Below are positions 16,709 through 38,972 of a stretch of DNA of 64,000 nt, one piece after another. The DNA lies in assembly GCA_002269645.1 (NCBI GenBank), contig NIVC01000857.1, forward strand, positions 62,001-126,000, in the 5' to 3' direction. Position 1 is the stretch's first letter, and each line of letters starts with the position of its first letter. A model generated the notes under the pieces. That model did not search any database. It was not told where the DNA came from and saw only the letters and a program-made list of their open reading frames with translations. The position numbers were made by a program, and so were the translations under genes. The DNA comes from Macrostomum lignano (Eukaryota).

Positions 16709-16803
16709 AACCACCGGGAACCACCGGGAACCACCGGGAACCACCGGGAACCACCGGGAACCACCGGGAACCACCGGGAACCACCGGGAACCACCGGGAA
16801 ACC
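16709..16803. repeat. 10-bp repeat (AACCACCGGG) x9; mirror at about 61956-62052
   Basis: Direct read. Confidence 0.93.
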
Positions 16804-17199
16804 ACTTTCTGTGTTGAAACAACTTCAGTAATGCTGAAGCTATAGATTTATTGCTTTTCGAATCCTAACAGAAAAGCTGCAGTCATATCTGAACTTTTGG
16901 TCAATTTCGCAATTCCGCCAGTTCTCGCAGGGCAACGCCGCGCTGAAGGCAGACTGTGCCACTGCGCGACTGGCTGGCGATTCCCCGGTCGAGATGGCGG
17001 GGCCAGGCAGCTGGCTGGCTTGGCTGGGGGGGGGGGGACAAGATGCAATTTTCACTCCAGCGGAAAATGCTTTTGAGAGCTGCCTGCTAATGGGGCCCCA
17101 GGCTGTCAATCAAAAACTTCTGCTCAAGCTGTCACTTCATAGGGAGCCAAGCTTTTCATCAAAAACATTTTGGGATGCAGAGGCACTTAGGAGTGCGTT

Positions 17200-18086
17200 C
17201 CCAGATCTCCCAGATCCCAGATCTCCCAGATCCCAGATCTCCCAGATCCCAGATCTCCCAGATCCCAGATCTCCCAGATCCCAGATCTCCCAGATCCCAG
17301 ATCTCCCAGATCCCAGATCTCCCAGATCCCAGATCTCCCAGATCCCAGATCTCCCAGATCTCCCAGATCCCAGATCTCCCAGATCCCAGATCTCCCAGAT
17401 CCCAGATCTCCCAGATCCCAGATCTCCCAGATCCCAGATCTCCCAGATCCCAGATCTCCCAGATCCCAGATCTCCCAGATCCCAGATCTCCCAGATCCCA
17501 GATCTCCCAGATCCCAGATCTCCCAGATCCCAGATCTCCCAGATCCCAGATCTCCCAGATCCCAGATCTCCCAGATCCCAGATCTCCCAGATCCCAGATC
17601 TCCCAGATCCCAGATCTCCCAGATCCCAGATCTCCCAGATCCCAGATCTCCCAGATCCCAGATCTCCCAGATCCCAGATCTCCCAGATCCCAGATCTCCC
17701 AGATCCCAGATCTCCCAGATCCCAGATCTCCCAGATCCCAGATCTCCCAGATCCCAGATCTCCCAGATCCCAGATCTCCCAGATCCCAGATCTCCCAGAT
17801 CCCAGATCTCCCAGATCCCAGATCTCCCAGATCCCAGATCTCCCAGATCCCAGATCTCCCAGATCCCAGATCTCCCAGATCCCAGATCTCCCAGATCCCA
17901 GATCTCCCAGATCCCAGATCTCCCAGATCCCAGATCTCCCAGATCCCAGATCTCCCAGATCCCAGATCTCCCAGATCCCAGATCTCCCAGATCCCAGATC
18001 TCCCAGATCCCAGATCTCCCAGATCCCAGATCTCCCAGATCCCAGATCTCCCAGATCCCAGATCTCCCAAATCTCCCAGATCCCAG
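17200..18086. repeat. 16-bp minisatellite (CCCAGATCTCCCAGAT), about 55 copies
   Basis: Near-perfect array; source of the spurious PDLPDPRSPRSQISQI and GDLGSGRSGIWEIWDL ORFs. Confidence 0.97.
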
Positions 18087-18769
18087 AATAAATTATCGTG
18101 GTGATTAAATTATAATGGCAATTTTTCTCCGAAAAAATCATCGTTGCTACTATGAGTAGCCGCCACGACCCCAGACTGATCTGCAAGCCTATACAGCTGA
18201 GCAAGTGTGTTCGCTCAAGCATCGAGTCTCAAATTTCCACCCCGGAGCCACTTGTGACCGAATGAGCTTCGAATTCCAGTAAGTCCTGCGCCGCCGCTGC
18301 GGCAACAAAGGAGGCTCCGTCCGTCCGGTTTCGATTTCCCGCGGGAAAAACCGTAGCTTTTGTTTCATTTTTCATGTCTTCCTGGGTTCGAGTTCGTGTT
18401 TTTTACTGCCCCCCCCCTTCGAGCTACTTAAATTTTGAAATTTTGTCACCAACCCCCGTCCCGGTTGCAGTTCCTCTTAGCAGCTGTAAACGGTTTTGTG
18501 TCCGGCATGTATTATTCATTGATTGACGGCGGCCCGGTGGCCGAGCGAAACCCGATCCGTCCGCAGGCCGCGGCGGGCAGATCGAACTCCCGGTTGCCGG
18601 GCGGACAGCAGCGAGAGCGGAACTGCGCCCGTAATTGAGCGGCGCGAAAATGCTTGTCAGTTTAAGTGGCTGTTCGCAAACTGACGGCCTCTTGGCAGGG
18701 CGGGAGAGAGGGACAGCGGGGCAGTGGGATACGGAGAGTCACTGGTGTTGGCCTGCGTGCGAGGTCGAC

Positions 18770-19558
18770 TGGGAGTGACGTCGAGTGTGAAAGTAAGAGC
18801 GACAGTGAGAGTGAAAGTTAGTAATATTGAGTGACAACCAGACTGACAATGAGCCTGGCAGTGAGTGAAATTGAGTGACTTAGAGAGCGAGAGTGACAAT
18901 GAGAGTGAGATTGAGTGACTCTGAGAGCAATGGTGACGCTGAGTGACACCGGGAACGAGAGTGACACTTAGGGACACTGAGAGTGATAGTGACAATAAGA
19001 GTGGCAGTGAGAGCGAGAGGGACAATGAAAGTGACAGTGAGAGTGACAATAAGAGCGACAGTGAGTGACACTGAAAGCGAGAGTGAAGATGAGAGTGACA
19101 GTGAGAGTGAAAATGACAGTGACAGTGAGAGTGAAAATGACAGTGACAGTGAGAGTGAAAATGAGAGTGACAGTGAGAGTGAAAATGAGAGTGACAGTGA
19201 GAGTGACAGTGAGAGTGAAAATGACAGTGACAGTGAGACTAACAGTGAGAGTGAAAATGAGAGTGACAGAGAGAGTGACAGTGAGAGTGAAAATGAGAGT
19301 GACAGTGAGAGTGACAGTGAGAGTGAAAATGACAGTGACAGTGAGAGTGACAGTGAGAGTGACAGTGAGAGTGAAAATAAGAGTGACAGTGAGAGTGACA
19401 GTGAGAGTGAAAATGAGAGTGACAGTGAGAGTGACAGTGAGAGTGAAAATGACAGTAACAGTGAGAGTGACAGTGAGAGTGAAAATGAGAGTGACAGTGA
19501 GAGTTACAGTGAGAGTGAAAATGAGAGTGACAGTGAGAGTGACAGTGAGAGTGACAGT
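18770..19558. repeat. Hexamer-based degenerate repeat (GAGAGT/GACAGT/GAAAAT); mirror at about 59485-60260
   Basis: Direct read; source of the SESE/NESD, VRV and HSHC ORFs. Confidence 0.9.
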
Positions 19559-20119
19559 CCGGCAACAAGCACAGGAGTTGGCCGTGGGCTGGCAACAAAG
19601 CGAGGCGGTTCAGCAGCGCACAGGGAAATCGATGAAGATTTTGCAGCCTCCCCGAGTATCAAATGATCCGAGCGGAGTCCGGGTCTCGCGCCCCGCAACT
19701 CGATAATCGAATTATGAACTCCATTGTCCCCCGCCGGGCCCGCCCCGCCCCTCTTGTCTCCGCCAATTCAACTCCCCGCTTTTCCCTCTTCTCCCCGCCC
19801 GCCCAAGTATCCGGGGCCCCGGTTTGCGCAAACAATTCGGCATCTCAGTGCCCTGAGCAATGCGGCTCGGTGCTCGGCCGGACTCTGAGCTCGAATTGCG
19901 CAACCCGCGAGAAGACGGGGAGTAGGCAATAAATCACTGAGAACTCGATTGAGCTGAGCTCGCGGACTGCTATTGATGGTTTTGTGTGTCCGGCAAGTTT
20001 TACGAGCTGGGGGTGGCGATTCGGGATGAAGATGTGCCCCGATGAGGGCCCCAGACTCCGCCGAAAACAGTATTTTAAGCAAACCTTTTCTAGATAAACT
20101 GAAGGTTTGTGAATTTAGC

Positions 20120-22460
20120 TATCTCACCCCATCTATCTCGTTATCCCATGCTATTGTCTGATATCTCACTCTGTCTATCTCATTATCCCATGCTATTCTC
20201 TGATATCTCACCCCATCTATCTCGTTATCCCATGCTATTCTCTGATATCTCACTCTGTCTATCTCATTATCCCATGCTATTCTCTGGTATCTCACCCCAT
20301 CTATCTCATTATCCCATGCTATTCTCTGATATCTCACCCTGTCTATCTCATTATCCCATGCTATTCTCTGATATCTCACTCTGTCTATCTCATTATCCCA
20401 TGCTATTCTCTGATATCTCACCCCATCTATCTCATTGTCTCATGCTATTCTCTGATATCCCACTCTGTCTATCTCATTATCCCATGCTATTGTCTGATAT
20501 CTCACTCTGTCTATCTCATTATCCCATGCTATTCTCTGATATCTCACCCCATCTATCTCATTATCCCATGCTATTGTCTGATATCTCACCCTGTCTATCT
20601 CATTCTCTCATGCTATTGTCTGATATCTCACCCTGTCTATCTCATTGTCTCATGCTATTGTCTGATATCCCACTCTGTCTATCTCATTATCCCATGCTAT
20701 TGTCTGATATCTCACCCTGTCTATCTCATTGTCTCATGCTATTGTCTGATATCTCACCCTGTCTATCTCATTATCTCATGCTATTGTCTGATATCTCACC
20801 CTGTCTATCTCATTCTCTCATGCTATTGTCTGATATCTCACCCTGTCTATCTCATTGTCTCATGCTATTCTCTGATATCCCACTCTGTCTATCTCATTAT
20901 CCCATGCTATTGTCTGATATCTCACCCTGTCTATCTCATTGTCTCATGCTATTGTCTGATATCTCACCCTGTCTATCTCATTGTCTCATGCTATTGTCTG
21001 ATATCTCACCCTGTCTATCTCATTGTCTCATGCTATTGTCTGATATCTCACCCTGTCTATCTCATTGTCTCATGCTATTGTCTGATATCTCACCCTGTCT
21101 ATCTCATTATCCCATGCTATTCTTTGATATCTCACTCTGTCTATCTCATTATCCCATGCTATTCTCTGATATCTCACCCCATCTATCTCATTATCCCATG
21201 CTATTGTCTGATATCTCACCCTGTCTATCTCATTCTCTCATGCTATTGTCTGATATCTCACCCTGTCTATCTCATTGTCTCATGCTATTCTCTGATATCC
21301 CACTCTGTCTATCTCGTTATCCCATGCTATTGTCTGATATCTCACTCTGTCTATCTCATTATCCCATGCTATTCTCTGATATCTCACCCCATCTATCTCG
21401 TTATCCCATGCTATTCTCTGATATCTCACTCTGTCTATCTCATTATCCCATGCTATTCTCTGGTATCTCACCCCATCTATCTCATTATCCCATGCTATTC
21501 TCTGATATCTCACCCTGTCTATCTCATTATCCCATGCTATTCTCTGATATCTCACTCTGTCTATCTCATTATCCCATGCTATTCTCTGATATCTCACCCC
21601 ATCTATCTCATTGTCTCATGCTATTCTCTGATATCCCACTCTGTCTATCTCATTATCCCATGCTATTGTCTGATATCTCACTCTGTCTATCTCATTATCC
21701 CATGCTATTCTCTGATATCTCACCCCATCTATCTCATTATCCCATGCTATTGTCTGATATCTCACCCTGTCTATCTCATTCTCTCATGCTATTGTCTGAT
21801 ATCTCACCCTGTCTATCTCATTGTCTCATGCTATTCTCTGATATCCCACTCTGTCTATCTCATTATCCCATGCTATTGTCTGATATCTCACCCTGTCTAT
21901 CTCATTGTCTCATGCTATTGTCTGATATCTCACCCTGTCTATCTCATTATCTCATGCTATTGTCTGATATCTCACCCTGTCTATCTCATTCTCTCATGCT
22001 ATTGTCTGATATCTCACCCTGTCTATCTCATTGTCTCATGCTATTCTCTGATATCCCACTCTGTCTATCTCATTATCCCATGCTATTGTCTGATATCTCA
22101 CCCTGTCTATCTCATTGTCTCATGCTATTGTCTGATATCTCACCCTGTCTATCTCATTGTCTCATGCTATTGTCTGATATCTCACCCTGTCTATCTCATT
22201 GTCTCATGCTATTGTCTGATATCTCACCCTGTCTATCTCATTGTCTCATGCTATTGTCTGATATCTCACCCTGTCTATCTCATTATCCCATGCTATTCTT
22301 TGATATCTCACTCTGTCTATCTCATTATCCCATGCTATTGTCTGATATCTCACCCTGTCTATCTCATTGTCTCATGCTATTGTCTGATATCTCACCCTGT
22401 CTATCTTATTGTCTCATGATTTTCTCGCATATCTCACCCGTCTATCTCTGTCTCATGATA
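20120..22460. repeat. 42-bp minisatellite (CTATTGTCTGATATCTCACCCTGTCTATCTCATTATCCCATG), about 56 copies
   Basis: Direct read; 14-aa period in the 797-aa repeat ORF. Confidence 0.97.
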
Positions 22461-23843
22461 TTCTCATATAGTGTGTGGTTAATAAATACATATATAATAT
22501 AGGTATTAACTCAGCCTCCAAGCTCGCATACTCACTCCACGCCATCAATTCAACGCAGCTCCTCCATCCACTTGAATTCAATAATGGGGTTGAGGATGTC
22601 ACACAGGTGTGAATTGGGGGCGTCAGTCTGAAAAAAAAACTGCATAATTCTGATGACTGTAATTAGGAACAGAGTTCAGCCACTTAGCAGAGCCTCATGC
22701 AGCCCTGGTGCGAACTAAATATTCGATCGCTTCGAATACAATTAAGCACCCGAAATTGGAGTCACCACTGGGGCCGGGAGTGACAAACTGATTTCAGAGT
22801 TCGAAAAAGTGTTCCGACGACACGGTTCATTGCCCGCGTGTTCAATGGCATATAAAATGTGTTTCAAGGTGTCCCCAGCACGGCATGGAGTTGAATAAAG
22901 CCGCGCACTGCAGTAGGGTTCGGGTCTGAGCGGTTGCGCAACACTGGAAGAAGAGACTGGCATTCGAGACAGATGAGGACTTGCTGTGGCACGCAGCCCC
23001 AGGGAAGCCTTCAATAGTCTGTTGCAATAAACACATTTTTTCGATCTTTCTGATCTTTATTTAAAAAATTCCTATTATAAACAGTGGGAAGTGGCGCACT
23101 GTGATCGGTCAGTGTTTGTTGCAACAGTCCACGGGTCTTGCAAGCGTGAGGCGGAGTTTCTAAATAAATAAGTAGCTGGCATCTCTGCCAAGCATTCCGC
23201 CGTAGTTGTAGTCTTTTTTGTGAACCAGTAGAAGGAAAGTTGGCTGCATAAACTTGCGTGTTTCAATTCTATAACTCTTTGCTTTGGCATTCTTTTACAC
23301 ACCTGATCCTCCGAGAGGTCTGAGCGAGCTGGCCAGGAGGGGGGGCATTTAATTTACAACACACTCAAAGTCACAACAACAGACAGGCGGGCAGTTCTGA
23401 CTGGCAAAACGGACCGGCGGCAAATTTTGGAACAATTAAAAAGGGGGTTGGCCAGAGCTGTGAGCAGCAAACTCTCAGTCCCAATCTCAACTCGAGTTTT
23501 ATTGTGTGCGGCGAGCCCGCATGCGAGGCCGGCCCGACTCTCGGTGGAGCAGCTGACCTGCCTGAGGGGGTGAATGGCGGCGGCAAACTTCTTGAGGCGG
23601 AGGGTGGGGTGGGGCGCCGGAGCCCGCGGATTGGTCGAGGATAAGTGGGGGGCGGCAGGCCACAGCTCGGTGAGGAATAAAGTGCGGCACGCATTCGCAG
23701 ACCAGCAGCATTGGGGCCAAACACAGACAGGCCGCTGCAGTGAAAGTCGCTGCTAGACTCGAATACTCGGATCGAGGACTGACTGACGGACAGGCGCATC
23801 CGGGCTGCAGGTTCGCACAGCAGGGAGCAAGGAGTCTGCCGCA

Positions 23844-25822
23844 ATGCTGCGTGAGTAACATCTGCATATCCCAGTCATTTTTGTCAGCCAAAAAACTGTA
23901 TTGCTCTCATGAGAGCTCCCGTGTTTTTTACTTCAAGCCTGAGCTTTCACTGTAGTTGATACACTTTTTCCTCCTCACTCCATTGTCCCAATGATGGGAG
24001 AATTATCCCCATTTCGATGCGCCGCGCTGCGTCCGCGAAATCAATCGGCCGCGAAGCCTCCCGGGAGCTGGCGGAGGGGGGCGGAGGCAGCTGACTCCCG
24101 CGCTGGGATGCAGCGAGTCAGCCAAGCGGCAAGGATCGGGGAACTCTCAATGATGCTTTGGGGAACAGAAAAATATCTCCAGAGAAAGGGGGAGTTTTTT
24201 CTGCAGCACACGCCAGCCCGGCACCCCGCGCAGTCCGCAGATCCCGTTACGGGGCTCCGCAACGCCTCAGCGGTCCCGGCTTTGCCCCCCCCCCCCCAGG
24301 CCGTGGAGTGTCTGGGAATGCAGTTTTGAGATCATCGGCTGGGCTCGATGCCCGGGCGACTGCAGCGGCGGCAGACAATGCCGGGCCGGCCGCTGCAGTC
24401 AGTGGGAAGCGCGCAGGCTCGGCAGCTGCTGTCGGGGGGTAGCGAATGATTTTTTGTGAGCTGAAAGCAGCGCTCGGTCTGGAAGCTGCTGCTGCTGCTG
24501 CCGCTGTCGCTAGCGACTCTCCGTGCGAAGCCCGCTAGGAAACAATGCTGCAGCTGTCGGCTCCCCAGCCTCCGCGATGCAGCCTCATCATCTCTATTTG
24601 AGCTCTGCTGCAGCTTCTCGATCTGCTTGGCTGCCCACAATCTCCCCCTGCTCTCGGCAGCCCCGCTGAGCGATCCTGCGACCCCGGCTGCGACCCCCCC
24701 CTGGCTTCATCTCCGTACCTAAGCCAGCCTCCTAAGCAACTAACGAGCGTACTGCATCAATTATTAAGGCAGAAATTTCAATTAACTACCTCTAGGAGAA
24801 GCAGGCAAGCAACTGCAGCGGATAATCCACTCTTCTGCATAGGACTGCTTTCATGAGGGGTTGCCGTGCCGCTGGGAGAGAAATTTCAATTGTGGGGCTG
24901 CTGGCATCATGAGATCCCTCTCCACCTGTGGATGGCTTTTCATTTTCTTATCCAAGCGGGCGAGCCTCTGATCCCGCCACCTGAGGAGCTCGGGGGGGGG
25001 GACACTTGACACGACTCTCCAGTCCCCTCGCCGATCGCCCAAGAGCCATTGACGCTGGCTGAGCTGTTGCGGGGGAACTCCGGGCTCCTTCTCGCTCCAA
25101 GGCAGCGGAATGCGAATGCCTTGCTCTCCCAGCAACCCGTCTCGCCCATCTTGAGCTGAGGGGGGAGGGTGGCAACCGGACCGTGACACGCTGCGCTGCT
25201 GCAGCCGCTGCCCGCCCAGCCAGCCGCGTCGCCCACACAAATGTTGCTCTTTGATTTTGGGCCTTCTGGCTGGGGGGACGCCTTGGAGACAGCAGCATTC
25301 AGACCCAGTGGGCTGTGACTCCCCGCCCCGTCAAACCTGCCCTGAGGACCCCCGCTGACCACCGCAGGCTGCCCCAGCTGTCCGACACCCCCGGCCGCCG
25401 CAGCCAGCAGAGCTTGAAGTCACACGCTCGGCCGGGCGTGCTCGAGCTGGGAGTCCGGGGGGCAAGGGGAGGGCCTCGACTTCCCGGCACGGGCCGCGGA
25501 GCACGGAGAGCTCGGCCGCAGCTGGCAGGCTATAAAGAGGCTTGAAGAGAGCGGGCAGTGAGGCTGGGAGCTCGGCACTTGAGCTGCTGCAACACCGAAT
25601 TTCTGCTTTGACCCGCAGATCACCAGGACCAGCTGCATCACCAGCAGCAGCTCGGACACCAGTTCCTTCTCGAGCAGCAGCAGCAGCAGCAATACCAGCA
25701 GAATTTCTGCAGCACCGGCGACAGTTTTGAGCACTTCGCCGCCATCATCGCCAGGGACCGGCAGCAGCACCAGCTGCACCTGCACGCGGACGAGGCTGTG
25801 AAAGGAGTGTCCGAACTCAAAG
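23844..25822 (+). CDS. Predicted distal 5' coding exons of Pax2/5/8 (left): 23844-23850 and 25619-25822, encoding MLHHQDQLHHQQQLGHQFLLEQQ...VKGVSELK(G)
   Basis: ATG CTG C|GTGAGT donor; tttgacccgcag|AT acceptor; 204-nt phase 1-1 exon ending AAA G|GTGAGT. Versus the right arm: 4 synonymous and 2 nonsynonymous changes plus an in-frame +6-nt CAG indel. Linkage to the paired-box exon is inferred from phase compatibility. Confidence 0.65.
25531..25537 (+). promoter_or_regulatory. TATA box (TATAAAG) 88 bp upstream of the 204-nt exon; mirror at 54591-54597
   Basis: Consensus match conserved in both arms while the adjacent 3' sequence diverges. Confidence 0.45.
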
Positions 25823-26699
25823 GTGAGTGAGCTGTCAATCAATTATTCTGGCAGACCGGTTTCATAGAATTAACATCGCAAATTGAGTGAGTAGGTGAAA
25901 ACAGGGCTCCCGGCAACTATAATCCTATGCAGATTTTAACTGACAAGCTTGAAGAACAATGGGATTTTCCTCAGAGTTTAATAATGTCCCTCTGTGTTTA
26001 TTTTCGCTCGGAATGTAATTTTCAATTTGCAATGACCTGGCAACCAGAACCCCGCTCTGTTCTGAAGGGAGAACTTTCTGTTATTCGCTCGCGAGAGGGA
26101 ATGAATGAAAATGTGCGAACCGAACCTGCGCAAGCGGTCGGTCACCGGACTGCCTGCAGGCACCCCGCTGTGAGGCTCCATTCGAAAGAGTTCGGTTGCG
26201 TCAGAGAGGGTTTATCAGAGAGTCCCCCTCCCAACCCCCGTCCGACCCAGAAGCCTCGCGGGCGCAGCGGCTTTCCGATGCTCTCTTTTTCGATGTTCTT
26301 CTTCTTCTAGGAGCAAGACTCGCCTGGTTTTTTGCGCAAGCCCGCAAGCCCCGGGGGCAAAGCGAGCGAGTTAAACCTGGGGGGGGGGGGGCTGGGTCGG
26401 GACAAAGTGTTGGGGCAATTCAACAATTACTTTTAGTTTGACACCCTCTGGAGAACTGGGAGGGTTTTTAGAATATAAATACTCGTAGCTCAGGATGATG
26501 CTCTGGACTATCCCGGGCTCTACTGGAATCGGGTGGAGCTCAAGCTGGTGTTTCTAATTCTGAGGCTGCGAATGCACTACCAGTTTTTGGCTGTAAATTT
26601 CTGTGTTTGAAGTAATATAGTCTGTAAACTGACTTGCTGAGGCTGCTAGGTTCAGGCTGTGACAAGTCTGTAAATTACTGTAACTGTGAGATTGGGACG

Positions 26700-27190
26700 G
26701 ATCGATATTGGCTGTAGAAGTTTGTAAATTCCTGTCAATATTGAGGTTGAGACATATCGATAGTGGCTGCAGATGTCTGTAAATTACTGTCAATATTGAG
26801 GTTAAGACATATCGATAGTGGCTGCAGAAGTCTGTAAATTACTGTCAATATTGAGGCTGAGACATATCGATAGTGGCTGTAGAAGTCTGTAAATTACTGT
26901 CAATATTGAGGCTGAGACATATCGATAGTGGCTGTAGAAGTCTGTAAATTACTGTCAATATTGAGGCTGAGACATATCGATAGTGGCTGCAGAAGTCTGT
27001 AAATTACTGTCGCTATTGAGGTTGAGACATATCGATAGTGGCTGTAGAAGTCTGTAAATTACTGTCAATATTGAGGCTGAGACATATCGATAGTGGCTGC
27101 AGAAGTCTGTAAATTACTGTCGCTATTGAGGTTGAGACATATCGATAGTGGCTGTAGAAGTCTGTAAATTACTGTCAATATTGAGGTTGA
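26700..27190. repeat. 55-bp minisatellite (GACATATCGATAGTGGCTGTAGAAGTCTGTAAATTACTGTCAATATTGAGGCTGA), about 8-9 copies
   Basis: Direct read; period of 55 verified. Confidence 0.93.
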
Positions 27191-29329
27191 GCCTGAAAAT
27201 CTCTACCCGTTCACCAAAGCCAAACAATCAAAGGCCGCATGACTCGAGTTCGTCTCCCCCCCCCAAGTCAAACAGGCCCACCAGAATGCGGGCTGCCCAG
27301 GTGAGGGGGGCAAACAGAAGGTCGCAGAGACCTGCACGGGAAGCCCCCAGCTGACTCGCCCCAGCGCAGTGATTTACTGCTCTCCGGGGTTGGGGCGAGG
27401 AAGTCCCGCCACTTTTTGCCCATCCTGTCAGCTCGATCGGGCATCACGCGAATGCGCCATTGAGGCTGCGGGCTCGAGTCCCGCCTGCTCCCGGCTCTCC
27501 ATTCCCCCTGTTGCTCAACCAACTTCCCACCCGCACCCAGCCCACGGGGTGATGAATTGGCTGGCACAGCTGACCCAACTGTCCCAATGCCGCTTGATGA
27601 AGCTGCCTCCTCCTCTCTTGATGGAGCTCGGGAGTCGCAGCGAATTTGGGATTCTCTGTCAGCTCGATTTGGGGCATTATAATTACAGAGCCCTTCTCCC
27701 TGGGGATTCGAACTCAAGACTTTCTCTGCGAGCTTCCAGTTTTTAGGATATCTTCATCGGCGCGTGACCGCCCCAGCCTCTGGGAAAATCGGGGAAACCG
27801 GGGGGGGCTTCGGGAGAAATGTCAGAATCAATTCCTCCCAACTGCAGGCTTTTGCATTCGAGCTATTGACTGGTTAGTGACTCGCCATGTAATTATTTGT
27901 GTCGTCTCATTGGAGGAGGAGAGGAGATCTCGCCCTCAGTGGCTACCGGGCTATTCGGGAAGAGCCGCGGTTGCTGGGCAAACTATTCGAAACCGTTGCC
28001 CAGGCCGCACGTGCAGCTTTCGGCAGCCGCGGAATTGTTTTACAAATTTGGTGTCGAAATTCGAATAAATCCAATCAATGGGTCCAGAGAGGAAGCAAAA
28101 AAGTGGCTGACTGAGGCCGGGTTGCTGGGGGCCCCGCGGTAGCCTCGGCTGAGTGGTGGGCGGTCTCGGCTTTCCAGCAAGCGCCCCACTTTCTCTTACA
28201 CAGCCAGCAGTCCTCATTAGCATTGCTAATTGCGGCATGTCCCCTGTGCGAGATTTCCAAGCCCGAGAACCGGCCGCGGAGCCTCGCACGCTGGCCGAAA
28301 AACGGCCGCCAACACAAATGCAAGCGAAGAGAAAGCAGAGTCTTTCAATCGCGCCCTCCATGCGGCCAGTGAGCACTGACTGCTTCTCAGCCCAGATGAC
28401 GCGGCTCCCATTCAGCCTCCCATTTGGACCCCATCAATCAGAGCGGCATTATGGACTGCTCAGGGGGGAGAATGGGAGACAGCATGCAGAGGGAGATGAG
28501 GCGAGGTGTCGCGGGGATCGGCCGAACAATTATCCCATGCGGCGGGAAGAATCCGCCGCGCGCCCTGCAGACCCCGCGGCCCGGCATTTTTAGGTCCGGG
28601 CGCAGAGGCTGGAAGGGAAGCAGAAAGTCCTCTGGGGATTCGGCGGGTCCGGGCGGTGCTGGATAAGCCAGCCGGGCCTGTCGCGCTCCGACGGCCTCGC
28701 AGATTTCTGCCGCCGCTGCTCAGTGAGCCGTTTAATGAACTGAGCTGGTGGGGGCGGCCTCAGAATCCCAGCGGCGGGGAGAAAGTGACTGCCCGGCCCC
28801 ATCTGCTTGGGATGCGGTTGGACTTGAACTTTCCCTATTAGGATTTTATTTATATTTTCGAGGGATTATAAATGTCGTTCGATCGGCCCTGGTGTCAGGT
28901 GGGCGCAGGCTTGGGCTGTCCAGGTGCTGAGTTGGGCGAATTGTCCCAGACTGCCCCGCGGTTCCCCATGCAGCTGCGTGAAGCTGCGCCATGCTTTGAC
29001 CTCCGGGATCGGAAAATTCGCGAGCCGAAAACCACTCAGACCAGCAGCCCTGCCCAGCTTTGCAGCAAATTTGAAAGCTTTTTTGTTTCCTTTATTCACT
29101 TTCTATGGGTGAGGCTCATCGGGATAATTTTCCCACTTCCTCGCGCTTCATCGTCACGCGATTTTCAACCGCCGGGATCTCCGGGATCAATACCGGGGGG
29201 GGGGGGTTGGCAGGTCAGGCGATGGGATCGAACCAAAGTGGAGGTGGCAAATCTGAGCGAGGCTGGCAATGGGGAGAATTCTGTCAGTTTTTGGGGAGGC
29301 TTTCGTTTCCCCTATTTACCTCATCAGTA

Positions 29330-29720
29330 GATGAGAGGAGAGGTGAGAGTCAGACAAGAGGAGATGGGAGAGTCAGACAAGAGGAGATGGGAGAGTCAGA
29401 GAAGAGGGGAGGGAAGAGTCAGACAAGGGGATAAGGGAGAGTCAGACAAGAGGAGATAGGAGAGTCAGAGAAGAGGAGATGGGAGAGTCAGAGAAGAGGG
29501 GATGGGAGAGTCAGAGAAGAGGAGATAGGAGAGTCAGAGAAGAGGGGATGGGAGAGTCAGAGAAGAGGAGAGATGAGAGTCAGATGAGAGGAGAGATGAG
29601 AGTCAGATGAGAGGAGATTGGAGTCAGACAAGAGGAGAGCTGGGAGTCAGATGAGAGAAGATGGGAGAGTCAGACAAGAGGAAATGGGAGAGTAAGCAGA
29701 ATAGGAGATGGGAGAGTCAG
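29330..29720. repeat. Purine-rich ~23-bp repeat (GGAGAGTCAGAGAAGAGGAGATG); shorter mirror at about 50690-50960
   Basis: Direct read. Confidence 0.85.
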
Positions 29721-30049
29721 GGAGAGAACTAAACTAGCGAACAAAATCGGAAGTGCATTTCTACAAAAGGTCATCGGAGACCAGAGAGAGTCAGGGCAGC
29801 AGGCAGTCAGGTCAGGGGGGTAAGGATTAACCAGAAGAGCCGTGAAGGACAGACTCGAGCAGAAGTAAAGAAGCAAAACCTCACTAAAAAGGATTCAAAG
29901 CATAAATATTTAATCCCGGGGTGTCACAAAAGCTCTCGAGGCCAGAAACCTGTTGGAGGCCTCCACTCTTCAATGCAGCCTGTCTCTCTTTCCCTTCCCT
30001 AACTAAAGCAGCGAAACCTCCCAGCTTCCGGGCTTCCGGATGAGGCTGC

Positions 30050-30130
30050 GGGCAGCCAATGGCTCGGAGGCCCCTAAAGCAGATCATTGGCTCGCTACGG
30101 GGGGCGGCGGAGGGCGGGGCGGGGCGCCGC
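30050..30130 (+). promoter_or_regulatory. CCAAT boxes plus GC box upstream of Pax2/5/8 exon 1a
   Basis: CAGCCAAT at about 30053-30060, ATTGG at about 30086 and GGGCGGGGCGGGGCG at about 30112-30126, 230-300 bp upstream of ATG 30358. Conserved in the right arm. Confidence 0.4.
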
Positions 30131-30357
30131 TTTCACTGGCGAGGCGCGATGAAGGGAATTTCGATGAGGCTTGGAGGCGGCTGGGGTGGCGCGCCGGTTT
30201 GCTGGGCTGCTGGAGCGGGGGAATTGCGAGCGGCGCTGAGAGAGCAAATAAAAAGGAGGCGGAGAGGGCGATGAGGCATCTTCTTGCGACTCTGCTGAAG
30301 CAGAAGATTTTGTCGACAATAAAAGCTGCAAGTTAAGCTTCTTTTGGGCCAGCTGAG

Positions 30358-33300
30358 ATGGACAGCCTGAAGTACCTGTGGCAGTGGTCCGCTCCCTCGG
30401 CCAGGGGAGCCGCTGAACTTCCCGGATCTGCCGAGGCCGCCGCCGCCTCCCAGTTTCTCAGCGCCGCGGCCGCCGGCGGCGGCGCAGGCGGCGGCGCAGG
30501 CGGCGGTTGCGGAGGCGGCAGCGGCGGCGGCGGGTCGCACGCGACTGCGATGGGCTACCACCGGGCCTGCCTGTACCCGCCGGGCCCGGGGCCCTCGCCC
30601 TACTGCCCCTACCCGTCGCCCTCCCAGGCCAGCTCGTTCTACGAGGACGTGTACATGCGGGCCAAGGGCGGCAAGGGAAAGGGTGAGTCTCCTCCGAGCT
30701 GCTCCCCGGGGGTGTCGCGTGCTGGTCTGGATGCTGAGCATTTCACAGGGCCCTGCCTCGCATCCGTGGCCCCGGCTCTTTGCCTTGTTTTCTAGCTGCA
30801 GATTTCCCAAAAGGCTGGGGAGCTGATCGCCTCTCATTGCTGTTTCTGGCGAATTCAATCGCTGAATTTTTCATGTACCTGAGACTCAGCTTCATCAGCT
30901 TCATTACAAAACAAAAAGCCGCAGTCTGCCAGGCTCCCTTGGGACCGGTAAAAAATTCATTGCTTTATGCTCATAGGTGATCTGGGACAAATTGGCGGAG
31001 CACCCGATCGCTGAATTATGCAGCACCGACTTTCCCTCACCATTTTATTGCCGAAAGTTTTTTCTTAAAAAAATTCAAACATCTGCTGAGAGCCGTCGCG
31101 GCGCTTATTTGTCCCCCCCCTTGATGGCGCTGGCACCTCCCTTAATTGGCTGGGACGCCTCGCTTTGTCAGATCTGTTTCTCTGATTTTGATTGTTTTAT
31201 TGCTGTGCTGTCTGAGTTCATTGCTTGGTGGCTCTCATGTTGGCACTGCTGCAGAGCGGGCTGCGCTCTCTGCGTGTCTTACGGAGTTTTTGGCCTCTTC
31301 CGCTGAATAATTAATCGGCTCTGCAGCCGGGGAGTCCCAGATCCTGACCAGCGCTGGTGAGATCGCAGCAGATCACTTTCGGAAGCAGGGCAAGAATTAA
31401 TGAATTTGTATTGGGGCTGGCAGGCGGGTTCTCACGCCAAGTTCATTATTTGTAAATGCAATATTTTTTGCACTGGCTAATTTGCACTGGCTAACTGGCT
31501 GAAATCGCAGGGCCAAGCCAGGCGGAAGTCAGGGGCGGGGAGTTGCGTATGCAAATTCGTTTGCGCAAGCGCAGAGACACGGGGGCGGAGAAAGTGAGAG
31601 AAACTCAGTCCTGTCAGCCACTTCAGCCGCTGGGCAGCCAGAACTGCTGTGGTTGGAAATGAACAACACCAACACTTCACTCAGCGGCCACCACTCATGA
31701 GAAGGCGCGCAGCTTCATCTCCAGTCTCCCTCTTCTTGTGCTTCATCGCGCCGACTCCGGCATCCTGCAGCAGCCGCCCCCCCCGCGGCGAAGCCTCAAA
31801 GAAGCCGCCGCCACGCCGCTGTCCCTTTGTGCGCGCCGGGGGGGGGCGGCCTCTCAGATCCACTCTTCTTTTCTTGTTGCCCAATTGCGCTAATTTAATT
31901 GCGTTACAAGTTGCAAGAAAAGTGATTTACGTCTCGTTACCCTCTGAGCAGCCACTCCGGGCCCGGCTCCCCATTCTCCATCGGCCCCAAATGCACATGC
32001 GTTTCCTGGAATGAGAGCCGTCCCTAACCCAGTTAAGTCCATGCCGGGACCTCCCTATAGCGCTCGCTAATCAAGAGGGGCTGATTTGGGGGGGGGTCAC
32101 GGCTCCGGGCGTATAAAATACGGAATTTCCGTGGCGTGGCTTTATTGCGTCCGCCAGCCCAGCTTCCTGGCCGCATCGGCATATATTGCTCAGGCCTGAG
32201 ATCCTCTCGCTTCTCCTTGGCTGGGGTTTTCCTCGCTTTGCAAGTGCGAATTCGCAGACTCGCGCCCGGCATAGCAGATGGACAGCGGCGGCAGCGGCCG
32301 CGGCAAAGGCGGAAACCCGCAGGAGTCCCTGCTGCGGTTGCACCTTCTTGGCATGTACCTGAAGAACATCGGTGAGCAGCATCATGGAGCTTCCATGGCC
32401 CTCAGAGATCTGAATAGCGCTCCCAGTGGCGCTCCCAGTGGCGCTCCCAGTGGCGCTCCCAGTGGCGCTCCCAGTGGCGCTCCTAGTGGCGCTCCCAGTG
32501 GCGCTCCTAGTGGCGCTCCCAGTGGCGCTCTCAGTGGCGCTCCCAGTGGCGCTCTCAGTGGCGCTCCCAGTGGCGCTCTCAGTGGCGCTCTCAGTGGCGC
32601 TCTCAGTGGCGCTCCCAGTGGCGCTCCCAGTGGCGCTCTCAGTGGCGCTCCAAGTGGCGCTCCCAGTGGCGCTCCCAGTGGCGCTCCCTGTGGTATTTAA
32701 AAAGGCGCTCCTGGGATCACTTCAAATGGCGCTCCCAAAAGAGCTACCACTGGCGCTTCTAATGGCGCTTCTAATGGCGCTTCTAGTGGCGCTTCTGATG
32801 GCGCTTCTTATGACGCTTCTAATGGCGCTTGTAATGGCGCTTTTAATGGCGCTTCTAATGGCGCTTCTAGTGGCGCTTCTAGTGGCGCTTCTAGTGGCGC
32901 TTCTAATGGCGCTTCCAATAGCCTTATAAGCAAGAATAACTTCCATGCCCCTTCATTGGTGACCCCAACGCCACTCTTGTTCGACCCCGCAGGCCACGGC
33001 GGCATCAACCAGCTGGGCGGAGCCTTCGTGAACGGCCGCCCGCTGCCTGACTTCACCCGCAACCAGATTGTCGAACTGGCGCAGCGCGGCGTCCGGCCCT
33101 GCGACATCAGCCGGCGGCTCCGCGTCAGCCACGGCTGCGTGTCGAAGATTCTCGGCCGGTTCTACGAGACCGGCAGCATCCGGCCTGGCGTCATCGGCGG
33201 CTCCAAGCCGAAGGTGGCCACCCCCTCGGTGGTGGACGCCATCTGCAAGTACAAGGCCGACAATCCCACCATGTTCGCCTGGGAGATCCGCGACATGCTG

Positions 33301-33608
33301 CTGTCCGAGGGCGTCTGCTCGCAGGACACCGTGCCCTCCGTGTCCTCCATCAACCGCATCGTGCGGAACAAGGCGGCCGAGCGGGGCGGCCAGTCCGGAG
33401 ATGACGAGGACGAGGGCCGCGCGCCCAGCTGCGATGGGCGGGAGCAGCAGCAGCAGCCGCCACCTCAGCAGGCCGCCAGCAGCAGCGCCGGCTCCCATCA
33501 GGGCTTGCTGCTGTCGAGCCACGCGGCCTACACCATCAAGGGGCTGCTGGGCGGTCTGAACTCCGCGGCCACTGCCAAAGACGGCCAGCAGCAGCAACAG
33601 CAACAGCA

Positions 33609-33644
<36 letters not shown>

Positions 33645-36600
33645 GAGTCAGCACCAGCAGCTGCTGCTGGCCGGTGACTCTTCGCCGGGAAGCTCTTCCG
33701 TCAGCAACGGCGCCCTGTCGGATGAGAATCAGAACAGCCTGCAGCAGCAGCAGCAACAGCAGCAGAGGAAACGCCGACACATGCAGATGCAGCACTTGAA
33801 TGACCCGGGTGAGCTGCTTTGATTTCTGTGGCGTTTCTCAAGCTCGAATCTTTACCAGCTCGAATCTTTACCAGCTCCAATCTTTACCAGCTCCAATCTT
33901 TACCAGCTCGAATCTTTACCAGCTCGAATCTTTACCAGCTCGAATCTTTACCAGCTCGAATCTTTACCAGCTCGAAACTTTACCAGCTCGAATCTTTACC
34001 AGCTCGAATCTTTACCAGCTCGAATCTTTACCAGCTCGAATCTTTACCAGCTCGAATCTTTACCAGCTCGAATCTTTACCAGCTCGAATCTTTACCAGCT
34101 AGAATCTTTACCAGCTCGAATCTTTACCAGCTCGAATATTTACCAGCTCCAATCTTTACCAGCTCGAATCTTTACCAGCTAGAATCTTTACCAGCTCGAA
34201 TCTTTACCAGCTCGAATCTTTACCAGCTCGAATCTTTACCAGCTAGAATCTTTACCAGCTCGAATCTTTACCAGCTCGCATCTTTACCAGCTCCAATCAT
34301 TACCAGCTCGAATCTTTACCAGCTCCAATCATTACCAGCTCGAATCTTTACCAGCTCGAATCTTTACCAGCTCGAATCTTTACCAGCTCGAATCTTTACC
34401 AGCTCGAATCTTTACCAGCTCGAATCTTTACCAGCTCGAATCTTTACCAGCTCGAATCTTTACCAGCTCGAATCTTTACCAGCTCGAATCTTTACCAGCT
34501 CGAATCTTTACCAGCTCGAATCTTTACCAGCTCGAATCTTTACCAGCTATTGTAGAATCTTTACCAGCTCCAATCTTTACCAGCTCCAATCTTTACCAGC
34601 TCGAATCTTTACCAGCTCGAATCTTTACCAGCTCGAATCTTTACCAGCTCGAATCTTTACCAGCTCGAATCTTTACCAGCTCGAATCTTTACCAGCTCGA
34701 ATCTTTACCAGCTCGAATCTTTACCAGCTCGAATCTTTACCAGCTCGAATCTTTACCAGCTCGAATCTTTACCAGCTCGAATCTTTACCAGCTCGAATCT
34801 TTACCAGCTCGAATCTTTACCAGCTCGAATCTTTACCAGCTCGAATCTTTACCAGCTCGAATCTTTACCAGCTCGAATCTTTACCAGCTCGAATCTTTAC
34901 CAGCTCGAATCTTTACCAGCTCGAATCTTTACCAGCTCGAATCTTTACCAGCTCGAATCTTTACCAGCTCGAATCTTTACCAGCTCGAATCTTTACCAGC
35001 TAGAATCTTTACCAGCTAGAATCTTTACCAGCTAGAATCTTTACAGCTAGAATCTTTACCAGCTCCAATCTTTACCAGCTAGAATCTTTACCAGCTAGAA
35101 TCTTTACCAGCTAGAATCTTTACCAGCTAGAATCTTTACCAGCTAGAATCTTTACCAGCTAGAATATTTACCAGCTCCAATCTTTACCAGCTAGAATCTT
35201 TACCAGCTAGAATCTTTACCAGCTAGAATCTTTTCCAGCTAGAATCTTTACCAGCTAGAATCTTTACCAGCTAGAATCTTTACCAGCTAGAATCTTTACC
35301 AGCTAGAATCTTTACCAGCTAGAATCTTTACCAGCTAGAATCTTTACCAGCTAGAATCTTTACCAGCTAGAATCTTTACCAGCTAGAATCTTTACCAGCT
35401 AGAATCTTTACCAGCTAGAATCTTTACCAGCTAGAATCTTTACCAGCTAGAATCTTTACCAGCTAGAATCTTTACCAGGGCCTGCAACCCGGCCTTCCAT
35501 TCATTTCAGACGCCACCAAGGAGCAGCAGTGCCACCGCCAGTCGCCACCGGATCGCCTAGAGGTGAGCATATTTGATTTATGTTTCCAAGGAATACAAAG
35601 CATTCCCATGGCCGAGTGACTCATTGAATAGAAATTCCAACCTCTTTCACAATCCAGTGGCTGTCACCGTCCAAGCGGATCAAAGTGGAGTCGCCAATTC
35701 CGGGCTCGAACCCCGGACTTCTGCCTGCACTCAGCGCCCAGCAGGCGGCGGCAGCGGCGGCGGCAGCGGCGGCGGCCTACGGCATCCCGCCGCAGGAGCC
35801 GCAGTTCTACCCGGCCTCCGCTGGCGTCCGGCACGCCGGGGCTATCACGGCCATAGCAACCACTTGGCAACCGAGCCGCAGTCGCTTCAGCCTCACCAGC
35901 CGCCTCAGCAGCCGCCGCCGCAGCATCAGCAACAGCCACCGCCTCCTCAGCCGCCGCAGCAGCCGGCGCTGCATCTGGAGTCGGACAGTCCGAAGCTGGA
36001 CGAGTTCCGAGCGCATTACGGACTGCCGGCAGCGCACCAGTACGGAGCCACCGCCAGCTACGCTGCGGAGTACGCGGCAGCCGCCGCCTATCAAGGCTAC
36101 GCCAGCCAGCACTACGCCAGCCAGCACTACGGCGCTCACCAAGATGCCACCGCCGCCTCCTCCTGGTTTCTGCAGTCCGCCTACGGCGCGCACACCAGGA
36201 TGAGTGAGTGCTGAGGGAGCCTCGCCAGGTTCAGGGGGTTGGTTTGTCGGGATCCCACGGGGCTTTAGGACATTGTTTCAACTGGGATTCATACGGGAGA
36301 TTCATCCGGGGTTCCGGAAACTTCAGGTTGGGGATTCATCCGGGGTTCCGGAAACTTCAGGTTGGGGATTCATCCGGGGTTCCGGAAACTTCAGTTTGGG
36401 GATTCATCCAGAGGTTCCGGAAACTTCAGGTTGGGGATTCATCCAGGGGTTCCGGAAACTTCAGGTTGGAGATTCATCCGGGGGTTTCTAAGAAAATTCA
36501 GAAGTTATCGATATAGGGAGCTTTAATTCATTTTAAAATCTCATTATTTTATTTAACAAAGCACCCAAAACGCCACTTTCACGACAGCCTACTATCAGTA

Positions 36601-36711
36601 GGCAAGCATCGCAAATTCGAATGAAATTAAATCAAGCCCGATCCTCCCGCAGACCCGCAGTACTATTACCCCTCAGCACCTGCCGCTGTCGCAAACGAAG
36701 GCCACTGCTGA
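30358..36711 (+). CDS. Pax2/5/8: Pax2/5/8 paired-box transcription factor, left copy (one apparent 1-nt frameshift in exon 4)
   Basis: Exons 30358-30682, 32993-33808, 35510-35562, 35658-36203 and 36653-36711, all GT-AG and phase-consistent. Paired domain [10 protein letters not shown]...[13 protein letters not shown]...[11 protein letters not shown]...[15 protein letters not shown]; octapeptide YTIKGLLG; polyQ tract; C-terminal NPQYYY. The G-run at 35838-35841 has 4 G versus 5 in the right copy. Confidence 0.92.
32112..32119 (+). promoter_or_regulatory. TATA box (TATAAAAT) of the proximal Pax2/5/8 promoter; mirror at 48274-48281
   Basis: Consensus match 166 bp upstream of ATG 32278. Confidence 0.55.
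32278..32371 (+). CDS. Alternative first coding exon 1b of Pax2/5/8 (left): [31 protein letters not shown](G)
   Basis: ATG downstream of a TATA box; ends ATC G|GTGAGC (phase 1), compatible with the paired-box acceptor at 32991-32992. Confidence 0.65.
32417..32915. repeat. Two related 12-bp arrays (GCGCTCCCAGTG about x23; GCGCTTCTAATG about x14); mirrors at about 47485-47975
   Basis: Direct read; located in the intron before the paired-box exon. Confidence 0.93.
33838..35478. repeat. 16-bp minisatellite (AGCTCGAATCTTTACC), about 100 copies, Pax intron
   Basis: Direct read; CTCG-type units 5', CTAG-type units 3'. Confidence 0.97.
36295..36485. repeat. ~33-bp repeat (GGGGATTCATCCGGGGTTCCGGAAACTTCAGGTT), about x5-6, last Pax intron; mirror at about 43915-44105
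   Basis: Direct read. Confidence 0.9.
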
Positions 36712-37189
36712 CCCAACCTGCCTGACTGCCACTGCGCGATGTTGCCTCTGCCGCTGCTTGTCCACTCCGCACTTTTCTGTCTACCTAGTCCCAGTGTTTG
36801 CAATCAGCCTCTCCGCCCTCCCTCAGCCTGTCAATTTCTGCTTTTTTGTCGTCACTTTTTGTTGTTGTTCTTGTTTTTCAAACTTCTTTTAGTCGCCTGT
36901 TGATGTTCTTGCCTGTAGCCACTTGTTGAACTTTCACCGCCGGACTCTCGTTTCCTCAGCTGTAAAACGCGCTCTGCAATGCTAAGATACTACTGGGGTT
37001 TCTCTCAGATATGCAGCTCTCTATACATTTAGTGTGTAGCAAAGTCTGCAAAATATACGCTGGAATATCTGTATTCTTCTTCTGCAAGAGGCCGCCTGTT
37101 CAGCGATAAGCCAACTGAATCCAATGATGCATTTTTCCTGTAGTCATTTTTCCTTTCTAAATTTGTCCGTATTGGCCTACTTAAAGTAG

Positions 37190-37195
37190 AATAAA
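37190..37195 (+). terminator. Candidate polyadenylation signal AATAAA of left Pax2/5/8
   Basis: About 480 bp after the stop codon and just before the 37250 array. Confidence 0.4.
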
Positions 37196-37247
37196 AGCGT
37201 ATTTTCCTAATTCTTTCTAAGCTTTGTATCGGAGAATGCTCTGTCTA

Positions 37248-38015
37248 GCACATTCTCTGTCTAGCACATTCTCTGTCCAACACATGATTTGTCTAACACA
37301 TTATCTCTCTAACACATTCCCTGTCTAACACATGATTTGTCTAACACAGTATCTCTCTAACACATTCCCTGTCTAACACATGATTTGTCTAACACAGTAT
37401 CTCTCTAACACATTCCCTGTCTAACACATGATTTGTCTAACACAGTATCTCTCTAACACATTATCTGTCTAACACATTATTTGTCTTAACACAGTCTCTG
37501 TCTAACACATTCCCTGTCTAACGAATTATCTCTCTAACACATTCCCTGTCTAACACATGATTTGTCTAACACAGTATCTCTCTATAACACATTCTCTGTC
37601 TAACACATTATCTGCCTAACACAGTCTCTGTCTAACACATTATCTGCCTAACACATCCCTTGTCTAACGAATTATATCTCTAACACATTCCCTGTCTAAA
37701 CATGATTTGTCTAACATAGTATCTCTCTATAACACATTCTCTGTCTAACACATTATCTGCCTAACACAGTCTCTGTCTAACACATTATCTGCCTAACACA
37801 GTCTCTGTCTAACACATTATCTGCCTAACACATCCCTTGTCTAACGAATTATATCTCTAACACATTCCCTGTCTAACACATGATTTGTCTAACATAGTAT
37901 CTCTCTATAACACATTCTCTGTCTAACACATTATCTGCCTAACACAGTCTCTGTCTAACACATTATCTGCCTAACACATCCCTTGTCTAACGAATTATAT
38001 CTCTAACACATCTCT
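37248..38015. repeat. Hierarchical 16-18-bp repeat (core CTAACACA), between the Pax and GATA 3' ends; mirror at about 42325-43160
   Basis: Direct read; higher-order blocks of about 120 bp. Confidence 0.92.
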
Positions 38016-38401
38016 GACACAAAGCAGTTGAGTGAAATTTTCAACTAAAATAAACCCAGTCAGTCGGCACCCAGGAGCTGGCAATAAAATTCCCAAAGAT
38101 ACACAATTGTTTCATTATATTAGCCCGCACAAACAACAACTCACACTCAAGTATAAGTTTTACACTGCTCATATTAAATAACAAGTAAATAAATACTGTA
38201 AAATTAAAAACTCAGTACACATTGCAAGAAAGCATCAAAAGTACGCAGTGTAAACGTAAAAAAGAAGAATTAAATGTGCGCTTGACGTGTGCATGCTGTG
38301 TGAACATCAAGACTCCATTTTTATGCTTTTTTGTTATCCACAACTGCGCCACCGTCCCTACTTGCAGTAGTCAGTTCAAGTAGTAAATATTTGCACAATT
38401 A

Positions 38402-38972
38402 TCAGTCGGCTTCACAGCAGCCCGAAAGGAGGTCGCCGCTGACGAAGGCGCCTCCCAGAATCCCTGCTGTGGATGCCGGGTACCGCGGCGGCGGCGCGGC
38501 GGCGGCTGTTGCTGCGCGCTGCTGCGGGGGCGGTGGTGGCGGAGGTGGAGGCGGCGGCTGCTGCTGCTGGTGCTGCGGTGGCGGCGGCGGTGGCAGCGCA
38601 GGCAGCCCCGAAGTCACGTGACTAAAGTGGCTTCCCGGAGCGGCGCTCTCCAAGCGCTGACGGTGCCGGCGCTAGCGCCACTGCCGGCCCTCCACCGAAG
38701 TAGTTCGCCGCCGGGAACTGGAAGCTGTGCATGGCGCTGCGCATCAGGTCGCTCATCGCGTCCAGCTCCTTCTTCTTCTTGCTCTTGATGGAGCTCTTGC
38801 GGTTGCGCGACTGGATTGAGTCCTTCTTCATGCTGATGGCCGGTCCACCTGGTGCAGCTTGAAGTACAGGCCGCAGGCGTTGCACACCGACGCCCTTGTG
38901 GTTGCGGCGCCACAAAGTCGTCTGCGTGTGGCGCAGTTCGAGGCAGGTCGTGCCGGCGCGGCGCTGCGCCGA
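38402..38972 (-). CDS. GATA1/2/3: GATA1/2/3 factor, left copy: only the last exon (C-terminal zinc finger to stop) is visible; several small indels
   Basis: cacgcag|TCG acceptor at 38972; [39 protein letters not shown]; stop at 38402-38404. Frame broken by +1/-1, -2 and -1 indels relative to the right copy. Upstream exons would lie in or beyond the N gap. Confidence 0.85.

Follow-up and report, generated by a model that had tools for sequence, protein, structure and literature searches.

An apparent palindrome at a Pax2/5/8 and GATA locus of Macrostomum lignano and its probable origin from two of three genome copies

Ampliconic palindromes, such as those of the human Y and X chromosomes, have inverted arms tens of kilobases (kb) in length with stretches of more than 99.9% identity and conversion from arm to arm, and a true palindrome has a sequenced spacer, near-uniform identity between its arms, and extra copy number. 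In the first assembly of Adineta vaga, scaffold “palindromes” were reportedly attributed later to assembly artefacts. In young polyploids, recent non-reciprocal homeologous exchange or conversion leaves sharp-ended identical tracts in otherwise diverged homeologs. Here we analyze a 64,000-nucleotide stretch of the Mlig_3_7 assembly of Macrostomum lignano (scaffold NIVC01000857.1, 163 kb, positions 62001–126000; hereafter the window, in which a position is the record position minus 62000), where two inverted arms holding a Pax2/5/8-type gene and a GATA gene are nearly identical apart from one sharply bounded diverged block. The closest described system is the M. lignano genome itself, approximately 85% of which exists as three copies, named subgenomes S, L1, and L2, with divergence between copies at single nucleotide polymorphisms (SNPs) of about 2.2% overall, 2.41% between L and S, and 1.91% between L1 and L2 (Zadesenets et al. 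2023, PMC10733133). For Mlig_3_7, PacBio reads of the inbred line DV1 were assembled by Canu 1.4 (errorRate 0.04), the result was polished by Pilon, and SSPACE scaffolded it with Illumina and 454 pairs (PMC5730564); S/L-chimeric scaffolds account for 36% of the assembly length, and expanded and collapsed variants have been reported (PMC10733133). The three-copy structure, the divergence of about 2.4%, and the chimerism of Mlig_3_7 are already published, and this locus is one more instance of them. The explanation that we consider best, with a probability of roughly 0.62, is that two of the three M. lignano copies were scaffolded head-to-head over a gap and now look like arms, that the block shows ordinary divergence between copies with the identical flanks as the exception, and that the mosaic arose through recent homogenisation together with a swap of phase by the assembler.

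Two arms, a gap, and a third copy

Comparison of the window with itself gave a single long inverted match, 14757–39400 against 64000–39816, and the mirror symmetry spans at least 38 kb about one point. The left arm (14757–39400) was aligned by MAFFT to the reverse complement of 39816–64000 and the differences were counted. There were 3 substitutions among 6750 aligned bases (0.04%) over 14757–23010, 259 among 7621 (3.4%) over 23011–30970, and 18 among 6014 (0.3%) over 30971–37300, most of these last falling inside a 16-bp array at 33841–35478 where the alignment slips register. Within the diverged block, three sub-blocks lacking tandem repeats had rates of 2.43%, 2.46%, and 2.30%. If the rate were uniform, the Poisson probability of such counts would be 7e-36 in the left flank, 9e-18 in the right flank, and 5e-37 in the block; divergence is not uniform, and the alignment confirms an earlier note on this stretch in describing a sharply bounded block between near-identical flanks. 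The outermost differences of the block are at 23015 (right arm 57163) and 30966 (right arm 49432), and the next difference beyond its right end is a homopolymer insertion or deletion (indel) at 31776. Both of the indels that had been named are present, one of 15 bp as described (right arm 49521–49535, opposite left 30875) and a larger one that measures 46 bp (right arm 56931–56976, opposite left 23201). The block holds 165 transitions, 57 of them at CpG, and 94 transversions, and its differences look like evolved divergence; sequencing error was considered as the origin of the block and is ruled out by this transition and CpG spectrum.

The arms are far from the near-uniform, very high identity of a palindrome, with 0.05% divergence in two tracts as opposed to 2.4–3.4% in the block and 2.5% over 1.5–14.0 kb. 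The near-identity described in the earlier note stands, but not the extent given there for the arms, which were taken to begin at 14.8 kb; that position is the mirror of the window edge. Near-identity starts at about 14.04–14.3 kb, and mirror homology continues, at 2.5% divergence, to at least window position 971. The right copy was fetched as a locus on NIVC01000857.1 (L001) that reaches 13 kb past the right edge of the window, and its part beyond the window pairs with window 971–14495 at 91–97% BLAST identity. Minisatellite arrays, with a 42-bp unit at 20120–22448 (55 copies) and 16-bp units at 17199–18073 (55 copies) and 33841–35478 (102 copies), are mirrored in the two arms and give spurious open reading frames (ORFs) of up to 797 amino acids (aa). 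In the flanks the arms differ chiefly in single-base indels and in array length, the latter by 281 bp in a 16-bp array and by 1134 bp in the 42-bp array, even where there are no SNPs. A search of the whole window against Rfam at gathering thresholds gave no match, and a Pfam search with the ten longest ORFs within the block and the ORF of the putative first coding exon (exon 1a, below) found no family and no sign of a transposon or other gene that would explain the block.

The symmetry centre is not sequence but a run of 415 N, a non-standard length, so that arms and spacer are not contiguous on one sequenced molecule as in a palindrome. We infer that this run is an SSPACE join of two Canu contigs, because SSPACE was the scaffolder used for Mlig_3_7. 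At the gap the left contig stops within a 14-bp array and the right contig starts in a GCN repeat, and a single repeat-rich site within the GATA gene most likely ended both. The innermost 982 bp of the right arm (39816–40797) have no counterpart in the left arm and exceed what a gap of 415 N could hold in mirror image; they hold the N-terminal finger as well as a GATA exon that runs open into the gap. The features at the centre are as follows.

39401–39815, no strand: scaffold gap of 415 N at the symmetry centre, in an assembly scaffolded with SSPACE (PMC5730564).
39816–64000, minus strand: right arm, the second contig, with another copy of the locus in reverse; 54710–64000 equals L001 13212–22502 (record 116710–126000) at 100.000% over 9291 bp without gaps.

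Copy number at this locus is not above the baseline. An ORF for glutaminase at 12574–13887 has 99% identity with M. lignano BOX15_Mlig006689g2, and three copies of this gene are annotated, g1 and g2 on NIVC01000857.1 and Mlig026033g1 on NIVC01000020.1, a scaffold of 1.55 Mb. The gene starting at 23844 is also annotated in three copies, with products of 541 aa (left), 563 aa (right), and 560 aa (third). Three copies, as counted from annotation and not from read depth, are the norm for this genome, and the arms are therefore most simply two of the three as opposed to an extra duplication.

A three-way alignment was made of the left copy (L, window 971–25420), the right copy (R, locus L001), and the third copy (T, locus L002 on NIVC01000020.1, reversed), with tandem arrays masked for the distances. 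The three are collinear over the window equivalent of 1.5–25.1 kb, and outside the identical tracts they show what is expected of a Mlig_3_7 three-copy block with about 2% SNP divergence and many indels, that is, pairwise distances of 0.9–2.7% and array indels of up to 1134 bp. The distances (d) and the numbers of sites at which one copy is the odd one out were as follows.

1500–5999: dLR 2.50%, dLT 2.53%, dRT 1.52%; odd sites L 57, T 24, R 23.
6000–14007: dLR 2.51%, dLT 2.57%, dRT 0.89%; odd sites L 124, T 27, R 23.
14042–23014: dLR 0.05%, dLT 1.22%, dRT 1.22%; odd sites T 46, L 1, R 1.
23015–25083: dLR 2.48%, dLT 0.97%, dRT 2.67%; odd sites R 43, T 12, L 8.

The odd one out changes from L to T within 14007–14042 and from T to R within 22698–23015, and the distances fit better if the third contig does not switch lineage at these points. 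Neither the left arm nor the third copy has the 46-bp insertion of the right arm, which, being private to that arm, fits R as the outlier within the block. The simplest reading of the aligned copies would have three lineages, with T representing one (Y2) throughout, a second (Y1) about 1% from it, and a third (X) about 2.5% from both. On this reading the left arm would carry X until about 14.0 kb and the right arm would carry it over 23015–25083 at least, and probably on to 30966, while both arms carry Y1 across 14.04–23.0 kb. In this last tract 46 T-odd sites were observed per 3850, compared with about 39 predicted from the distance between Y1 and Y2 and about 78 from the distance between X and Y; these predictions, and the tail probability of about 6e-5 for the value of about 78, are our own Poisson estimates from the masked counts. 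A divergent lineage hopping from L to T to R over three contigs was considered first and then ranked lower, as it predicts the larger number. The alternative that the earlier note had offered, a switch of haplotype or subgenome, is supported by this comparison with the third copy. Two further features of the three-way distances deserve mention. Over 1500–5999 the copies are nearer to equidistant (dRT 1.52% as opposed to 0.89% further on), the relationship among copies shifting again near 6 kb, and within the block there is a 230-bp cluster of T-odd or L-odd sites at 24142–24367, where the local distance between L and T is 2% compared with about 0.5% in adjacent windows.

The segments of the two arms may be listed as follows, with the lineage that each would carry on the three-lineage reading.

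1–14030, no strand: left copy upstream of the outer identical tract, read as X; its mirror partner is outside the window (L001 1–13211); dLR 2.50–2.51%, dLT 2.53–2.57%, dRT 0.89–1.52%, with L-odd sites dominant.
14042–23014, no strand: outer identical tract, Y1 in both arms, intergenic and minisatellite-rich; dLR 0.05%; odd sites T 46, L 1, R 1.
23015–30966, plus strand: diverged block in the left arm, 2.4–3.4% from the right arm and, over 23015–25083, 0.97% from the third copy; read as Y1 at least to 25083.
49432–57163, minus strand: mirror of the block in the right arm, read as X, with R odd at 43 of 63 sites and dRT 2.67% in 23015–25083.
30967–39400 (end of the left contig), no strand: inner identical tract, with the paired-box exon, the Pax C-terminal exon, and the 3′ part of GATA; no substitutions outside arrays to about 35.8 kb.

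Since the divergence of 2.4–2.5% in the block equals the published level between copies, divergence would be the default state and the identical tracts the exception. The earlier note had proposed conversion that homogenises the coding core while promoters diverge, and the distribution of genes does not bear this out: the identical tract at 14.04–23.0 kb is flanked by the glutaminase stop (13887) and the annotated gene start (23844) and has no coding sequence, while the diverged stretch at 1.5–14.0 kb covers the coding genes for UMP synthase, an ASC channel, and glutaminase. The same proposal is also disfavoured by a block divergence no different from that between copies genome-wide, by a palindrome without a sequenced centre, and by a normal number of three copies. 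No tie of the block or its boundaries to promoter function is seen on present evidence, and its fit to the proposed promoter region, which had been described as exact, is read here as a coincidence of recurring switch points, three of them 8–9 kb apart.

The Pax2/5/8 and GATA genes

The gene coordinates given in the earlier note proved largely right, with annotated starts at 23844 and 56289 and strong donors at 25822 and 30682. The features of the two genes in the arms, and of the neighbouring genes in the left copy, are as follows.

23844–25822, plus strand: annotated start of a gene spanning the Pax locus, and putative distal non-coding first exon; the gene starts at position 22209 of L003 (window 23844) and at L001 20923 (window 56289, equivalent to left 23844).
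30358–30682, plus strand: putative coding exon 1a, from ATG to the donor GAAAGG/GTGAGT, inside the block.
32956–33822, plus strand: Pax2/5/8-type paired-domain exon (PF00292, E = 5.4e-67, positions 1–125 of 125); mirror at 46583–47449, minus strand.
35573–36214, plus strand: Pax C-terminal exon, its frame in the left copy shifted by a one-base deletion at 35837; the right copy at 44189–44719, minus strand, is open.
38799–38965, minus strand: C-terminal zinc finger of GATA in the left copy, broken by one-base indels (three-frame translation).
39816–41700, plus strand: GATA gene in the right copy, with the 5′ coding exon open into the gap, the N-terminal finger at 40618–40771 with one frameshift, and the C-terminal finger at 41364–41531 intact.
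About 4835–9524, minus strand: ASC channel gene, left copy gene call.
About 11633–13887, plus strand: glutaminase, left copy gene call.

The paired domain is complete over the full length of PF00292 and clearly of Pax2/5/8 type by sequence, its best matches in a protein search being named Pax-5, Pax-2, Pax-2a, Pax-2/5/8, or shaven at 76–86% identity, and the exon also contains an octapeptide-like YTIKGLLG motif; there is no difference between the arms in this paired-box exon. Upstream, the distal exon ends at the donor CAAAG/GTGAGT at 25822 with no in-frame ATG before it, and the GTGAGT donors at 25822 and 30682 are both strong splice donors. Between the arms the ORF at 30358–30682 has 4 synonymous and 2 non-synonymous differences, compared with 0 synonymous and 6 non-synonymous or stop differences in the following 113 bp (Fisher P = 0.06), which weakly suggests that 30358–30682 is a real coding exon under constraint. 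The peptide of exon 1a is also joined to the paired domain and the C-terminus in P0302, an independent, frameshift-ridden M. lignano gene model. A model of the Pax gene built on strong sites has 589 aa by our own arithmetic. Enumeration of splice sites for the annotated product of 563 aa yielded 14 models with three exons that reach this length, every one of them using weak sites. The Pax C-terminal ORF had no match in Pfam at E ≤ 0.01.

The left copies of both genes contain frameshifts that may be consensus errors, the deletion at 35837 (corresponding to right 44566) and those in the GATA finger. Between the arms over 38000–39050 (compared with 41250–42300) there are only 3 substitutions, as opposed to 16 indels of one base and 2 of two bases, and in the final 1.4 kb of the left contig as a whole substitutions are almost lacking, with 16 one-base indels in comparison with the right arm. 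This pattern looks like that typical of a thinly covered end of a long-read contig, and the indels in the left GATA finger look less like the marks of a pseudogene than like errors of the consensus where a contig ends. A frameshift near 40677–40679 divides the N-terminal GATA finger of the right arm between two frames, in sequence with no counterpart in the left arm.

Public M. lignano gene models for the Pax and GATA locus are unreliable. P0302 strings the Pax pieces together through frameshifts and is on no contig on record, and P0245 (UniProt A0A1I8FQF5) fuses GATA to an antisense translation of the Pax C-terminal exon. The N-terminal 23 residues of P0245, considered as a marker of a GATA exon past the contig ends, had no match in the window, and this model is too unreliable to use. 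No Mlig_3_7 protein of the Pax and GATA locus turned up in protein searches that used exon 1a, the paired-domain exon, the GATA pieces, and the Pax C-terminus as queries. The gene upstream of glutaminase is also called differently in the two copies: in the left copy (L003 3200–7889, minus strand; window about 4835–9524) it is a 762-aa ASC channel with PF00858, and in the right copy (L001 3569–14326, minus strand) it is an 809-aa product over 10.8 kb that overlaps glutaminase and has no Pfam match on record.

Explanations weighed

In the explanation that we prefer, two contigs would each represent one copy of a locus with UMP synthase, an ASC channel, glutaminase, Pax2/5/8, and GATA, joined head-to-head over the 415 N, and the arms would be two of the three copies (S, L1, and L2) of a neopolyploid genome. 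Two chromosome copies would have been homogenised recently over tracts of 8–9 kb by gene conversion, recombination, or loss of heterozygosity, and the assembler would have been free to swap phase within such SNP-free tracts, which would explain how X came to lie in the left arm before the outer identical tract and in the right arm after it. That the identical tracts of 8–9 kb (14.04–23.0 and 30.97–39.4 kb) reflect real and recent conversion between homeologs or homologs, or loss of heterozygosity, between two subgenomes is a tentative part of this explanation, to which we would give somewhat less than even odds.

Several points weigh against this explanation. The join across the gap and the phase of the contigs at 14.0, 23.0, and 30.97 kb are judged from the assembled sequence. 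The third copy was compared up to the window equivalent of 25083, and the comparison of T-odd densities presumes a similar substitution rate in adjacent segments. The count of three copies comes from annotated proteins, and a fourth, unannotated copy is conceivable. Tracts of 8–9 kb are long for meiotic gene conversion. Lastly, the three subgenomes have been published as genetically isolated, which is hard to square with very recent exchange (PMC10733133).

An assembler could also have made the whole mosaic. In this case X, Y1, and Y2 would all be present at full length in the genome, Canu would have stitched together reads from different subgenomes, the switches at about 14.0, 23.0, and 30.97 kb would be chimera junctions, and the X sequence of the identical tracts would be missing or on another contig. 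The closest pair of copies changes at abutting points, within 35 bp and within 316 bp, as expected of label switches, and segments of 8–9 kb are about the length that we assume for long reads of that period. The errorRate of 0.04 used in Canu is to be compared with a divergence of 1–2.5% (PMC5730564), and the published share of S/L-chimeric scaffolds and the expanded and collapsed variants (PMC10733133) point in the same direction. Against this, Y1 in both arms of the outer tract requires Y1 reads to have been split over two contigs and X reads to have been dropped, and the junctions at 14.0 and 23.0 kb are outside repeats, with the lineages distinguishable on both sides. Array lengths that differ between the arms within the identical tracts argue that one consensus was not simply copied twice, and the variant with a hopping lineage predicts, by our estimate, about 78 T-odd sites in the outer tract where 46 were found. 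We regard an assembler-made mosaic as unlikely, and we favor real homogenisation over assembler chimerism as the cause of the mosaic because chimerism needs Y1 reads in two contigs, the loss of X reads, and junctions in distinguishable, non-repeat sequence.

Residual polymorphism is improbable. Here the arms would be alleles segregating in the DV1 culture and the block an old haplotype segment, and the long identity of the arms is what would be expected of alleles of recent common ancestry in DNA that was presumably taken from pooled worms. DV1 cultures are known to vary in karyotype (PMC5730564), but the line has been described as highly inbred with a within-subgenome heterozygosity estimated as negligible (PMC10733133), and blocks remaining after inbreeding should be far longer than 8 kb. 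A true inverted duplication on one chromosome, with conversion between arms and the Pax2/5/8 promoter and first-exon region escaping it or diverging under selection, would account for a mirror symmetry about a single point and for a block that begins 829 bp before the annotated gene start and ends 284 bp beyond the exon 1a donor, but we consider it very improbable given a central N gap shorter than the adjoining unmatched 982 bp, arms 2.5% apart at 1.5–14.0 kb such that identity is not the rule, an identical tract at 14.04–23.0 kb that is non-coding, a copy number of three that is the genome norm and not more, and a left arm that within the block is 0.97% from a copy on another scaffold, which simple decay of arms would not yield.

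Comparison with described systems

The explanation that we prefer, of two copies scaffolded head-to-head, has practical implications. An apparent palindrome in Mlig_3_7, with an apparently promoter-specific block, can come from a scaffolder placing two subgenome copies head-to-head, and caution is warranted where such structures are met in this assembly. Designs for knock-outs, reporters, or copy-specific expression of Pax2/5/8 or GATA should expect three copies and not a palindromic pair. If the identical tracts are real, exchange that is still going on between subgenomes of a young animal polyploid would become open to study through them, and the published view of genetically isolated subgenomes would not hold, with heterozygosity eroding in kilobase patches.

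Compared with ampliconic palindromes, this locus has an N gap at its centre, patchy identity (0.05% as opposed to 2.5% divergence), and a copy number at the genome norm. The Adineta vaga scaffolds are similar in that allelic or homeologous regions were reportedly inverted on one draft scaffold, and differ in being from another organism and other assemblers. Young polyploids with homeologous exchange resemble this locus in having identical tracts within homeologs, diverged here by about 2.5%, the exchange itself being a candidate here. Uncollapsed haplotigs and false duplications of long-read assemblies, a problem that HapSolo deals with (PMC7788845), are similar in that a “haploid” assembly retains both versions of a locus and a scaffolder sets them side by side, with near-identical parts that differ by repeat length and homopolymer indels; the copies here differ in that they are probably fixed subgenomes of a neopolyploid rather than diploid alleles, and their removal would delete real sequence. 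The Mlig_3_7 three-copy blocks (Zadesenets et al. 2023, PMC10733133) were described there in 5-kb windows and whole scaffolds, and head-to-head joins and kilobase tracts of full identity were not among the features reported, but the likeness is otherwise close, with the same assembly, three copies, a block divergence of 2.4–2.5% that matches the 2.41% between L and S, indels and changes in array length, and chimeric scaffolds.

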